Assembly: GCA_004764695.1 (NCBI GenBank)
Contig: SMSO01000009.1
Location: 62,001 to 126,000 of the forward strand
Direction of reading: 5' to 3'
DNA length: 64,000 nucleotides
Source: Schizochytrium sp. TIO01
Taxonomy: Eukaryota; Protista; Bigyra: Labyrinthulomycetes
Positions 2,113 to 63,770 of this stretch are shown in pieces (the first letter of the stretch is position 1; each line of letters opens with the position of its first letter). Position numbers and translations under genes: made by a program. Below the pieces are notes generated by a model that worked only from the letters and a program-made list of their open reading frames with translations, was not told where the DNA came from and made no database searches.

Positions 2113-5100
2113 ATGTCGGACCACCCACGTGTTGTCGCTGCCCTTGAACAGCTTCAGAATGGTGCTACAACACTGAAGTAAGTTAGCATCGCTTGCTTGC
2201 TTGCTTGCTTGCTTGCTTGCTTGCTTGCTTGCTTGCTTGCTTGCTTGCTTGCTTGCTTGCTTGCTTGCTTGCTTGCTTGCTTGCTTGCTTGCTTGCTTGC
2301 TTGCTTGCTTGCTTGCTTGTCTGTTGTATTAAGTATGCATCTAACAAAGAGCAATATAACAACGCAACAAAGATGAAATCCTGAAAGCCAATATCGATCA
2401 CTCACTAATTCTATGCATGCATCTAATGTGTATTGTCTTGGTTGCCATCATTCAATCAAATCAAAAGTCTTGGTGGCAACAACATCGGCCCAGAGGGTGC
2501 CAAAGCAGTGGCTGCGGCTCTGAAAGAGAACCAGTCGCTGACATCACTTGAGTAAGTTGTCTTACATGCTTGCTTGTCTGTTGTATTAAGTATGCATCTA
2601 ACAAAGAGCAATATAACAACGCAACAAAGATGAAATCCTGAAAGCCAATATCGATCACTCACTAATTCTATGCATGCATCTAATGTGTATTGTCTTGGTT
2701 GCCATCATTCAATCAAATCAAAAGTCTTGGTGGCAACAACATCGGCCCAGAGGGTGCCAAAGCAGTGGCTGCGGCTCTGAAAGAGAACCAGTCGCTGACA
2801 TCACTTGAGTAAGTTGTCTTACACTTGTTTGTATATGAGGCTCGCTTACTTGGTTGTTTGGGTGGTGGGTTGTTCAGTGTGTTAAATTGGACGGTGATAT
2901 TTTGCTCAGTTTTGATTTGCAAGTTTGTGTATGCGATTGCTTGTTTGATTGATTCACGGATCAATGATCTGTTTGATTGAGTTTGTATCCAACAAAGAGC
3001 AATATGACATTTCAACAAAGATGAAATCCTGAAAGCCAAAATCGATCACTCACTAATTCTATGCATGCATCTAATGTGTATTGTCTTGGTTGCCATCATT
3101 CAATCAAATCAAAAGTCTTGGTGGCAACAACATCGGCCCAGAGGGCGCCAAAGCAGTGGTTGCGGCTCTGAAAGAGAACCGGTCGCTGTCATCACTTGAG
3201 TAAGTTGTGTTAGACGGCGGCATGTGGGTTGCTTTTGCTAAATTGTTTCGTTGATTGCTTGCTCAGCTGGGTAGGTGGGAGGTGGATTGTTTGGTGTGTT
3301 GAATTGCACAGCGGTGGTTAGCACGAATTTGTTTTGCAAGTTTTTACGCTTGCTTGTTTGTTTATTTGATTGATAGATAGATTGTCTGTTTGATTGATTC
3401 AGTATGCATCCAACAAAGAGCAAAATGGCAACGCAACAAAGACGAACTCCTGAAAGCCAACATAGATCACTCACGTCCATGCATGCATATAATGTAATGT
3501 ATTGCTTGCCATCAAATCAAAAATCAACAGTCTTCGTTCTAACAGAATCGGCTTGAAGGGCGCCAAGGCAATGGCTGTGGTGCTGAAAGAGAACCAGTCG
3601 CTGACATCACTATAGTAAGTTGTCTTGGCAGCAGCTCGTGGACTTGTTTGTAAATAAGGTCCGCTTGCGTTGCTTGGTTGTCTGGGTGGTGGGTTGTTTG
3701 GTGCGTTGAATTGCGCGGTGGTCGTTTGTTGCTGGGTTTTAATTTTCAAGTTTATGTATGCGATCGCTTATTTGTGTGAGTAATGGATTGATTGTCTGTT
3801 TACAAAGAGCAAAGTGACAACGTAGAAAGATGAGTTGTGAAAGCCGACCTAGATCACTCACGTCCATACATGCGTATAATGTTATGTATTGCTTGTCATC
3901 CTTCAATTAAATTAAAAAGTCTATATGGGAACGACATCGGCGACGAGGGCGCCAAGGCAGTGGCTGCGGCGCTGAAAGAGAACTGGTCGCTGAAATCACT
4001 ATCGTAAGTCGTTTTGGCAGCAGCTCGTGGGCTTGTTTCTACATGATGCTCACTTGCTTGGTTGTCTATGTGGTGGGTTGTTCAGTGCGTTGAGTTGTAG
4101 GGTAGTCATTTGCTCGGTTTTGATTTGCAAGTTTATGTACGCGATTGCTAGTTTGTTTGATTGATTGATGGATTGGTTCTCTGTTTGCATCAAACAAAGA
4201 ACAAAGTGACAACATAAAAGGATGAAATTCTGAAAGCCAACTTTGATCACTCACGTCCATGCATGCATAATAATGCAATGTATTGCTTGTCATCCTTTAA
4301 TTAAATCAACAGTCTATATTTGAACGACATCGGCGACGAGGGCGCCAAGGCAGTGGCTGCGGCGCTGAAAGAGAACCGGTCGCTGACATCACTATCGTAA
4401 GTTGTCTACGCAACAGTGCAGCTCATGTACTTGTTCGTACATGAGGCTCGCTTACTTGGTTGTCTGGGTGGTGGGTTGTTCAGTGTGTTAAATTGCACGG
4501 TGATATTTTGCTCAGTTTTGATTTGCAAGTTTGTGTATGCGATTGCTTGTTTGATTGATTCACGGATCAATGATCTGTTTTATTGAGTTTGTATCCAACA
4601 AAGAGCAATATGACATTTCAACAAAGATGAAATCCTGAAAGCCAACATCGATCACTCACGCCTATGCATGCATCTAATGTGTATTGTCTTGGTTGCCATC
4701 ATTCAATCAAATCAAAGTCTTGGTGGCAACAACATCGGCCCAGAGGGCGCCAAAGCAGTGGCTGCGGCTCTGAAAGAGAACTGCTCGCTGACTTCACTAT
4801 AGTAAGTTGTCTTAGTGGCCTTATTTGTACATGAGACTTGCTTGATTGCTTGTTTGTTGGTTGATGTGCTAAGTTGGACGGTACTTTGCCAAGTTTTGTT
4901 TTGGAAGCTTATGTAAGCGAGTGCTAGTTTGATTGATGAATTGATTATTTGTTTGATTGAGTTTGCATACATGGCCACGTGGCAACGATGAATTCCTGAA
5001 AGCCAACCTAGATGACTCATGCATGTAATATATTGTTCTATGCATTGCTTGCTATCATTCAATTAAATCAACAGCCTAGAGCGGAATAAAATCGGCTCAG

Positions 5101-62400: not shown

Positions 62401-63770
62401 GTTTGTACGTGATGCTTGCTTTGCTGTTTGGTGGATGGCTTTGCACGGTGGGCTTTGCACGGTGTCACTTTGCAAGTTCATGCAACCTCTTGTTTGCTTG
62501 TTTGGTGGATGAATACGTGGCTTGTTTGACTGAGTCTGCACCCATCGAACAAACGAGCAAAATGAAAACACAACAAAGATGAAATTCTGAAAGCCAACCT
62601 AGATCACTCACGTCCATGCATGCATGCATCTGATGCACTGTATTGTACTGCTTGCCATCATTCAATCAAGTCGACAGTCTTTATAGCAACTATATCGGCT
62701 CAGAGGGCGCCAAGGCAGTGGGTGCGGCGCTGAAAGAGAACCGGTCGCTGACATCACTTGAGTAAGTTGTCTACGCAACACCGCAGCTCATGGACTTGTT
62801 TGTACATGATGCTTGCTTTGTTGGTGTATTGTTTTGATCGGTGTTGTTTTGCAAGTTTATGCAATCGCTTGTTTGTTTGATGGAAGGGTAAGTTGTCTGT
62901 TTGACTGAGTATGCATCCATCAAACAAAGAGCAAAGTGACAAAAAAAATAGTTGGAATCCTGAAATCCAACCTAGATCACTCACGTCCATGCATGCATGC
63001 GTGTATCTAATGCAATGTAATGTGTAATGTATTGCTTGCCATCATTCAATCAAATCGACAGTCTTTCGGGCAACCAGATCAGCTTAGAGGGCGCTAAGGC
63101 AGTGGCTGCGGCATTGAAAGAGAATCGGTCGCTGGAGTCACTTGCGTAAGTTGTCTTAGCAACACCACAGCTCATGGACTTGTTTGTACATGATGCTTGC
63201 TTTTGTTGGTGTATTGTTTTGATCGATGTTGTTTTGCAAGTTTATGCAATCGCTTGTTTGTTTGATGGATGGATAAGTTGTCTGTTTGACTGAGTATGCA
63301 TCCCTCGAACCATGAGTAAAACGATATCACAACAAAGATGAAATCCTGAAAGCAAACCTAGATCACTCACGTCCATGCATGCATGCGTGCATATAATGCA
63401 ATGAAATGTATTGCTTGCCATCATTCAATCAAATCTACAGTCTTCGAGGGAACAAAATCGGCTCAGAGGGCGCCAAGGCAATGGCTGCAGCGTTGAAAGA
63501 GAATCGGTCGCTGACATTACTTGAGTAAGTTGTCTTAGCAACAGCGCAGCTCATGGACTTGTTTGTACACGATGCTTTCTTTGTTGGTGTGTTGTTTTGG
63601 TCAGTAGCTCACTCACTTCCATGCATGCATGCGTGCATCCAATGCAATGTAATGTATTGCTTGCCATCATTCAATCAAATCGGCAGTCTTTGGATCAACG
63701 ATATCGGCTCAGAGGGTGCCAAGGCAGTGGCTGCAGCGTTGAAAGAGAACCGGTCGCTGACATCACTTCA
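59403..63770 (+). CDS. Multi-exon LRR protein, 5' part only (>=11 LRR exons; continues beyond the window)
   Basis: Leader exon 59403-59467; 84-bp exons starting at 59943, 60321, 60721, 61099, 61491, 61884, 62281, 62678, 63062, 63441, 63687; all introns GT..AG phase 2, no stops. Confidence 0.85.
59492..59839. repeat. (GCTT)87 microsatellite in intron 1
   Basis: Perfect tetranucleotide run preceded by (GCTC)3. Confidence 0.97.

Follow-up and report, generated by a model that had tools for sequence, protein, structure and literature searches.

Four genes built from one-repeat exons

The window analysed in this study is a 64-kb stretch of the genome of Schizochytrium sp. TIO01 (C8:62001-126000, where C8 is the 238-kb contig SMSO01000009.1 of a 64.07-Mb, 37-contig assembly). 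Beside its rRNA genes it carries tandem 385/421-bp repeats, and these are the exon-plus-intron units of four genes for leucine-rich repeat (LRR) proteins. The presence of hidden, spliced, modular and fast-diversifying LRR genes at this locus is well supported. Tandem Repeats Finder placed long-period arrays at 2593-4812 (period ~391), 21372-28415 (period 377-385), 53056-57313 (period 425) and 60882-63851 (period 379-393). The cassettes themselves were sought on both strands as AG, 84 nt and GT with an LRR-like translation, followed by inspection of the gaps by eye, and they number 48: 8, 18 and 11 in the three plus-strand arrays and 11 in a minus-strand array. Repeats of comparable length have been described as LORE-TEARS in Aurantiochytrium limacinum, where they were proposed to be non-coding chromosome-end spacers (Collier et al., bioRxiv 10.1101/2023.06.15.545109). 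In that set, Group 0 (~385 bp) separates the 18S gene from the 5S gene closest to it, and Group 5 (~421 bp) has a 5S gene on either side (bioRxiv 10.1101/2023.06.15.545109). We use these group names for the cassettes of the window.

The cassettes are uniform in design, with one LRR to each symmetrical exon. The exon is 84 nt long and stop-free in 47 of the 48 cases, the remaining one measuring 83 nt (55977-56059, minus strand). An acceptor AG stands upstream of all 48 exons, the donors are GTAAGT (n = 37), GTACGT (n = 10) and GTGAGT (n = 1), and all introns of the gene models run from GT to AG. The layout is one base, 27 codons and two bases, with phase 2 on both sides; because of this symmetry, the frame can survive the gain, loss or skipping of LRR units. 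The junction codon, formed by the last two bases of an exon and the T or C that opens the next, is in no instance a stop. Each of the four arrays is preceded by an ATG leader exon ending in phase 2 (two extra bases, then GTAAGT). Repeat finding, scans and direct reading thus bear out the first-pass annotation of this DNA, which had described four arrays of 8, 18, 11 and at least 11 cassettes, 84-bp exons (one of 83) between AG and GTAAGT, GTGAGT or GTACGT, all in phase 2, and a phase-2 leader exon before each array; it was correct in every countable detail.

Domain, structure-database and similarity searches were run exon by exon. The encoded repeat has a period of exactly 28 residues (84 nt) and conforms to LxxLxLxxNxIGxxGxxxLxxxL, the type found in ribonuclease inhibitor (RI) and NLR proteins. 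Six single exons each matched positions 10-24 of Pfam LRR_6 (PF13516; E 2e-4 to 8e-3, 17-21.6 bits), scores that stay just below the 23.4-bit cut-off because a single exon covers only part of the profile register. Among solved structures, one LRR exon matched porcine RI (8.6e-8), NOD2 (4e-8) and RI-like LRR proteins down to 2.8e-16, and the matches also include NLRX1 and RI-like axonemal proteins. The earlier assignment of the repeats to the 28-residue RI/NLR class therefore holds. The exons of the four genes are as follows.

Gene 1
2113..2177, plus strand: leader exon, ATG, 21 codons and 2 nt, donor GTAAGT (from the sequence)
2191..2319: (GCTT)32 microsatellite in intron 1 (Tandem Repeats Finder)
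2468..5158, plus strand: array of 8 LRR exons of 84 nt, starting at 2468, 2725, 3116, 3531, 3920, 4313, 4718 and 5075
5259..7806, plus strand: terminal exon with Roc GTPase, COR-A and TIR (Pfam, RNA joint, frame check)

Gene 2
21028..21092, plus strand: leader exon, same peptide as the gene 1 leader
21523..28398, plus strand: array of 18 LRR exons of 84 nt, Group-0 type, in units of ~385 bp, last start 28315
28696..29032, plus strand: terminal exon encoding a predicted 111-aa helical tail (frame check)

Gene 3
57500..57552, minus strand: leader exon, ATG, 17 codons and 2 nt
53021..57323, minus strand: array of 11 LRR exons, Group-5 type, in units of ~421 bp, donor GTACGT, introns near-identical
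55977..56059, minus strand: defective cassette, 83-nt exon with a 1-nt deletion near its 3' end
52657..52851, minus strand: linker exon, 195 nt, phase 2 to phase 2 (sequence and frame check)
49819..52507, minus strand: terminal exon with a region of ~420 aa, a kinase and RING-like and Rcat-like Cys clusters

Gene 4
59403..59467, plus strand: leader exon (sequence comparison)
59943..63770, plus strand: 11 LRR exons within the window, last start 63687; the array runs off the window

Exon joins were checked computationally for product length and stop counts. The three arrays that are complete within the window join in frame to different terminal modules, as had been proposed, gene 3 doing so through a linker exon that the first-pass annotation had not listed. 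The model of gene 1 (leader, 8 LRR exons and terminal exon) encodes 1094 aa with no internal stop, that of gene 2 (leader, 18 LRR exons and terminal exon) 637 aa, and that of gene 3 (leader, 11 LRR exons, linker and terminal exon) 1258 aa if the 83-nt exon is skipped. In the next 4.6 kb of the same contig, gene 4 continues with 9 more intact 84-nt exons and a terminal exon of the tail type, giving 20 LRRs.

The terminal module of gene 1 belongs to a ROCO protein: within 5197-7806, Pfam recognised Roc (63.1 bits, cut-off 27) and COR-A (45.5 bits, cut-off 35.3), and the translation carries the GTPase motifs GKGGAGKT (P-loop) and DxxGQ. A TIR domain follows (TIR_2 47.3 bits, cut-off 28; TIR 31.2 bits), so that the predicted ROC-COR-TIR end of one array stands, with all three domains above their Pfam cut-offs. 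The TIR domain matches the bacterial TIR chains 4lzp and 7uxr weakly. For the catalytic Glu that TIR NADases carry after the beta-C strand there are two candidates: one lies in PARE and aligns with the PARE of chain 4lzp, the other lies in C-R-x-E-F and is shared by all of 8 homologs. Two twin genes, 99 % identical to gene 1, lie on contig C7. They hold 7 and at least 6 cassettes, the second possibly having another in a gap of 762 nt. The first two LRR exons of gene 1 sit inside an exact 257-bp tandem duplication (2310-2823, 100 % identity), which accounts for its 8 cassettes against the smaller number in the twins; relative to the seven-cassette twin it adds one in-frame LRR. The duplication reflects either a cassette acquired very recently or an error of the assembly. 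At the stop codon of gene 1 (7804-7806), base 7805 is A here and C in both twins, and the open frames of the twins are 4 residues longer (873 vs 869 aa).

The terminal exon of gene 3 encodes a protein kinase (Pkinase, 100.1 bits) with HCDIKPEN and GDFDG in its translation; the ~420 aa ahead of it gave no Pfam match and no usable ESM-Atlas match. Two Cys clusters follow the kinase, their Cys columns conserved in 7 paralogs. The second aligns Cys for Cys with the RING2/Rcat domain of parkin, including the G-C position of the catalytic cysteine, at a marginal E of 0.078-0.11, and other zinc fingers score similarly (ARIH1 E 0.025-0.8, RNF4 0.009, and likewise the zinc fingers of E6AP). Compared with the RBR E3 ligases (parkin, ARIH1), gene 3 resembles them in this alignment of the second cluster with Rcat and differs in having no IBR between its two clusters, the E-values being only 0.08-0.8. 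Pfam IBR_2 is far below threshold in the Cys region (E 2.6, 8.7 bits vs a cut-off of 27), and an AlphaFold2 (AF2) model of that region has low confidence (pLDDT 55, <50 over the Cys clusters). The kinase half of the proposed kinase-RING/Rcat module is thus secure at 100 bits, whereas its RING/Rcat half is a Cys pattern with marginal E-values and a low-confidence fold, a reasonable motif-level reading rather than a demonstrated domain.

The last module of genes 2 and 4 is a tail of 100-111 aa, for which Pfam gave no match and ESM-Atlas no usable one. An AF2 model built on 15 aligned paralogs folds it into two long helices (pLDDT 74), predicting a helical hairpin or coiled-coil-like module and not a known effector. 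The first-pass annotation had counted the 111-aa tail among the effector domains; its position as an in-frame terminal exon stands, but it contains no recognisable effector domain.

Splicing and sequence diversity of the cassettes

We aligned contigs assembled from sequencing runs to positions 2325-7900, excluding the adjoining (GCTT)n stretch. Runs X1-X3 are typed as RNA by an automatic guess and X15 is a DNA run; the guess fits the intron-free coverage. X2 and X3 hold 29-40 Mb of contigs vs 63.5 Mb in X15. Four GT..AG joints fall exactly at predicted exon borders in both X2 and X3 (3199>3531, 3614>3920, 4003>4313 and 5158>5259), the last of which, connecting the final LRR exon to the ROC-COR-TIR exon, also occurs in X1. 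None of the four is present in X15. Bins wholly within introns 4 and 6 (3627-3812 and 4557-4742) have a depth of 0 in X2 and X3 and of 134-255 in X15, and unspliced contigs reach about one tenth of the spliced depth. One X3 contig that begins at exon position 2468 carries upstream, as a loose end only, the last 30 bases of a leader of the gene 1 type. The joints in the RNA runs thus show splicing from cassette to cassette and on to the Roc-COR-TIR exon, and the loose end adds splicing from leader to cassette. RNA places the start of the Roc-COR-TIR exon at 5259, after an intron of 100 nt, and rules out the alternative terminal acceptors at 5192 and 5211.

Three further joints (2551>3936, 2808>4329 and 4393>3936) would suggest exon skipping or back-splicing, readings that are ruled out by the 16-28 foreign letters these contigs carry at variable codons; the joints are therefore attributed to contigs of paralogous transcripts partly aligned to gene 1. 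Many joints come from such paralogous LRR transcripts; they show splicing and expression of the wider LRR family, with nothing specific to genes 2-4. Splicing is observed directly for the ROC-COR-TIR architecture only, and the reads fit its 99 % twins at least as well as gene 1; to this extent the proposal that the cassettes are spliced exons is confirmed.

For the analysis of diversity, each cassette was aligned with its preceding intron, Group 0 providing 34 units. Group-0 introns have a nucleotide diversity (pi) of 0.168, and framework codons one of 0-0.1 at first and second positions, while codons 2, 3, 5 and 8 and the junction codon reach 0.52-0.71 at all three positions. In the Group-5 array of gene 3, intron pi is 0.027 (335 columns) vs 0.4-0.75 at codons 2, 3, 8, 25 and 26. 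Thus 4-5 codons per repeat show 4-20 times the diversity of the introns, next to conserved framework codons; after correction, the excess of the variable codons over the introns is about 6-fold for Group-0 units and rises to about 44-fold for the Group-5 array. In the motif L-x-x-L-[j]-L-x-x-N-x-I-G-x, where j is the junction codon, the variable residues are those marked x in the beta-strand and in the loop after it. In solved structures of RI, variable lymphocyte receptors (VLRs) and plant LRR proteins, those x positions form the concave binding face.

Constraint on the reading frame is equally clear. Between neighbouring Group-0 units, introns show 1.1 indel events per 84 nt, and the 37 exons show 0; stops at variable codons, 10.2 of which are expected from position-wise base frequencies, number 0 (P about 4e-5). 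The ratio of non-synonymous to synonymous change (dN/dS) of the Group-0 framework is 0.34, and among the leaders of the three plus-strand genes only three bases vary, each time synonymously. Frame and framework are under strong purifying selection, and extreme diversity is confined to 4-5 codons per repeat. Decay of the exons by stops and frameshifts at the neutral rate, which the first-pass annotation had named as a result that would tell against coding, is not seen within the window, and its claim of rapid diversification is upheld both by the few codons per repeat that are far more diverse than the introns and by the turnover of cassettes between paralogs described below.

Ribosomal DNA setting, genome census and known systems

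The LRR genes alternate with rRNA genes, located with Rfam:

1529..1647, minus strand: 5S rRNA gene, divergent from gene 1 and 466 bp from its ATG (RF00001, 96.5 bits)
20454..20572, minus strand: 5S rRNA gene, divergent from gene 2
32762..38286, plus strand: complete 18S-5.8S-28S ribosomal DNA (rDNA) unit between genes 2 and 3
46332..46450, minus strand: 5S rRNA gene downstream of gene 3
58788..58906, minus strand: 5S rRNA gene between genes 3 and 4

The four 5S genes are identical and all on the minus strand. Those at 1529, 20454 and 58788, transcribed by Pol III, lie 456-497 bp from, and divergent to, the ATGs at 2113, 21028 and 59403 of the Pol II-transcribed LRR genes. Genes 1, 2 and 4 are homologous from the 5S gene to the leader (81 % column identity), encode one and the same leader peptide and use Group-0 cassettes, and their conserved 5S-LRR intergenic region looks like a shared bidirectional module that was duplicated as a unit. 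The same 5' module and cassette family is followed by different ends, Roc-COR-TIR in gene 1 and the tail in genes 2 and 4. In these three genes, (GCTT)n tracts of 32, 65 and 90 copies occupy 2191-2319, 21105-21365 and 59480-59840, beginning 13-14 nt past the leader-exon donor (15 nt after its GT); as their length differs in every copy, they could modulate first-intron splicing or expression.

The statement in the first-pass annotation that rDNA-associated repeats of similar unit length had been described in Aurantiochytrium as LORE-TEARS proved correct. The 377-393-bp array of the window between the 5S gene at 20454 and the 18S gene at 32762 corresponds to Group 0, and the 425-bp array between the 5S genes at 46332 and 58788 to Group 5; the match is one of unit length and position. 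The preprint mentions neither LRRs nor coding (bioRxiv 10.1101/2023.06.15.545109), and two later Aurantiochytrium papers do not mention LRR or TIR genes. Unlike the typical chromosome-end layout in the preprint, the stretch after the 28S gene (38286-46332) lacks the ~406-bp Group 1 repeat, and the rDNA is oriented away from the near contig end; for these two reasons the rDNA unit seems to be an inner or atypical copy.

Counts for the whole assembly, all of them lower bounds, are as follows.

Group-0 exon, first-look candidates: about 1076
Group-5 exon, first-look candidates: about 464
Group-0 leader modules: about 80
Roc-COR-TIR modules: 17 (42-99 % identity, no stops)
Kinase modules: at least 45 (61-97 % identity, most intact)
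Paralogous tails: about 100

On this sequence-based census, the genome holds more than 100 such LRR genes. The paralogous modules are mostly stop-free, and dozens of terminal open reading frames (ORFs) of 850-925 aa are intact. The closest paralog of gene 3 has a kinase module 97 % identical to that of gene 3, 5 cassettes vs 11, and no variable residue pair in common with it. On the multi-megabase contigs C13, C30, C31 and C34, the LRR genes, tails and kinase modules are concentrated in a few places inside the contig, for example near 1.7, 5.5, 8.3 and 9.7 Mb on C30, a pattern consistent with an assembly that has fused chromosome ends head to tail.

The closest described system is that of brown algae (Ectocarpus, kelp), whose LRR-ROCO genes, regarded as candidates for immune receptors, have one 72-nt phase-2 exon per 24-residue LRR (Zambounis et al. 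2012, PMC3341825; PMC11378527), with exon shuffling and positive selection on the concave face (PMC3341825; PMC11378527). These sources support the statement of the first-pass annotation that one-repeat-per-exon shuffling is known from brown-algal ROCO-LRR genes. Both systems share a symmetrical phase-2 exon per LRR, shuffling, changes in copy number, attachment to ROC-COR, positively selected concave-face residues (a prediction here), clustered fast-turnover families and a stramenopile host. They differ in the repeat, which here is of the RI/NLR type with 84 nt and 28 residues instead of 72 nt and 24, and in the outputs: brown-algal ROCOs lack TIR, whereas the window combines ROC-COR-TIR, kinase with putative zinc clusters, and the predicted helical tail. 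Unlike in brown algae, moreover, the exon-intron units here form near-perfect tandem satellites within 5S/rDNA subtelomeric units. The thraustochytrid cassettes are accordingly an analogue or a distant relative of the brown-algal type, not a member of it.

In the related thraustochytrid Hondaea fermentalgiana, predicted LRR-Roc-COR-TIR proteins (e.g. P0003, P0004, P0005 and P0007) show 43 % identity over the whole Roc-COR-TIR module and the same architecture with N-terminal LRR_6 repeats, and they bear only automatic names (LRRK2, NOD2). In a collection of 5.8 billion proteins, the products of the window genes were not found, with nothing closer than 56-58 % for either large module, and because the nearest public proteins are this distant, the LRR genes of the window are unannotated. 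A metagenome scan returned only distant Roc relatives, with 22-46 % identity.

The genes also resemble animal and plant NLRs and lamprey VLRs in pairing a putative RI/NLR-type LRR sensor with variable residues predicted on the concave face and in forming large, clustered, fast-evolving families, and they resemble plant TNLs in their TIR output. They differ from NLRs in that a Roc-COR GTPase takes the switch position in place of NACHT or NB-ARC, for which Pfam gave no match in any terminal module; they are thus not NLRs of the STAND class. Lamprey VLRs assemble somatically, whereas no evidence of somatic assembly was found here: when runs from four studies, carrying four organism labels, are set against the assembly, no differences are listed at the variable codons, and this stability indicates that the variation is germline, not somatic.

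Interpretation, alternatives and remaining features of the window

We consider it probable, though well short of certain, that these are spliced one-LRR-per-exon genes with alternative 3' modules that act as a diversifying repertoire for immune-type or other non-self recognition. According to this model, a shared 5' module next to a 5S gene, consisting of a promoter region, the 21-codon leader and a (GCTT)n-bearing first intron, would feed arrays of 8-20 repeats onto alternative 3' modules, and the variable codons would line a concave ligand-binding face. The proteins may serve as cytosolic variable sensors in which binding of a ligand switches a GTPase/TIR or a kinase/E3-like output, and subtelomeric recombination associated with rDNA may keep the repertoire diversifying. 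The first-pass annotation had proposed the sensor arrays of a pathogen-recognition system. Coding, modular and diversifying arrays are what we found, while the immune role, and with it pathogen recognition, is one that we infer.

Several observations weigh against this interpretation. RI-type LRRs are frequent in non-immune proteins, the axonemal DRC5 and RSP15 being among the top PDB matches. Gene 3 carries a frameshifted exon, and inclusion of the 83-nt exon leads to a stop at residue 129. The RNA evidence covers the gene 1 type, while the models of genes 2-4 are read from DNA. Even for gene 1, the RNA contigs carry A, C, A, C and C at 5114, 5705, 6062, 6548 and 7805, which are the alleles of the twins on C7; because of these alleles, the transcripts can be assigned to the clade of gene 1 and its two twins, or to the counterpart of that clade in the strain, and not provably to the gene 1 copy. 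Finally, Nei-Gojobori dN/dS within the variable codons is only 1.1-1.4. This value is low and uninformative because the codons are saturated, and for that reason the case for diversification rests on the contrast with introns and framework, a contrast that a local mutational or conversion process could also underlie.

A first alternative, which we regard as unlikely but worth serious attention, is that these are spliced LRR genes for variable, non-immune scaffolds of protein interaction, acting in allorecognition or a mating-type-like distinction of self from non-self, in cytoskeletal, flagellar or ectoplasmic-net regulation, or in general ROCO/kinase signalling. In its favour, a single repeat has axonemal RI-type LRR proteins as well as RI and NLRs among its best matches in solved structures, the commonest terminal module is a helical tail without a signalling domain, and Dictyostelium ROCO proteins act in chemotaxis and development (PMC11378527). 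However, diversity restricted to a few codons, a very large family, rapid turnover of cassettes and a TIR output are together the signature of a recognition repertoire and not of housekeeping scaffolds.

Two alternatives concern the origin of the variable codons. The more far-reaching, which we hold to be quite unlikely, is that every chromosome-end rDNA/5S unit carries its own variable-LRR gene and that a directed process, a localised conversion or hypermutation tied to subtelomeric rDNA recombination, rewrites 4-5 codons in each cassette and no others, the units around them being kept homogeneous; this would amount to a germline receptor-diversification machine in a unicellular heterotroph infected by mirusviruses. 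The other, very unlikely in our judgement, is a programmed germline diversification in which targeted mutation or gene conversion acts at 4-5 codons per cassette and selection does no more than purge stops and frameshifts, in place of classical positive selection. Codons 2 and 3 are different in nearly all Group-5 units, against an intron identity of 97 % (a raw excess in diversity of ~20-fold), and the ~44-fold excess of corrected hypervariable dN over intron diversity is more than selection on point mutations usually gives; differences along synonymous paths in the variable codons are, in addition, as high as non-synonymous ones. On the other side, neither a mechanism nor donor cassettes were identified for such targeting, and the homogeneity of the introns could equally result from concerted evolution, with selection keeping the variant codons.

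The reading of the repeats as primarily structural chromosome-end or rDNA spacers, published for LORE-TEARS, under which the transcripts would be incidental read-through of decaying pseudo-exons, is scarcely tenable here and largely refuted, for although the arrays lie in subtelomeric rDNA units beside 5S genes and one exon is frameshifted, 47 of 48 exons are intact, exons have 0 indels vs 1.1 per 84 nt of intron and 0 stops vs about 10 expected, the splice sites are all canonical, spliced RNA is present and dozens of terminal ORFs of 850-925 aa are intact; a structural role could coexist with coding.

The coding reading corrects the published interpretation of LORE-TEARS Groups 0 and 5 as non-coding, these repeats being the bodies of more than 100 expressed-type genes. 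If a diversifying recognition repertoire is the right reading, the building of receptors from one exon per repeat, known from brown algae, would be extended to a unicellular heterotrophic stramenopile, the novelty lying in the different LRR class, in the TIR, kinase/E3-like and coiled-coil outputs and in the recombination-prone subtelomeric rDNA setting. With a host that has persistent mirusviruses and is genetically tractable, protist innate immunity would become directly testable. The locus also cautions against repeat-masking, which conceals real genes when their introns are no less repetitive than the exons.

The remaining features of the window lie outside the LRR system. ORFs at 10111, 17440, 18079, 31183 and 44667 gave no Pfam match. 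Between genes 1 and 2 lies a neighbouring retroelement:

10719..15857, plus strand: intact Ty1/copia-type gag-pol ORF of 1712 aa (Pfam RVT_2, rve and Pol_BBD)

At 13525-13961 this ORF holds 8.6 tandem copies of a 51-bp unit, which stay in frame and translate into a 17-residue peptide repeat, acidic and rich in Ser and His. On the 3' side of the 28S gene, Rfam reports two tRNAs (38970-39084 and 40806-40880), of which ARAGORN supports only tRNA-Arg(ACG) at 40806-40880; the 115-nt match at 38970-39084 may be an intron-containing tRNA.

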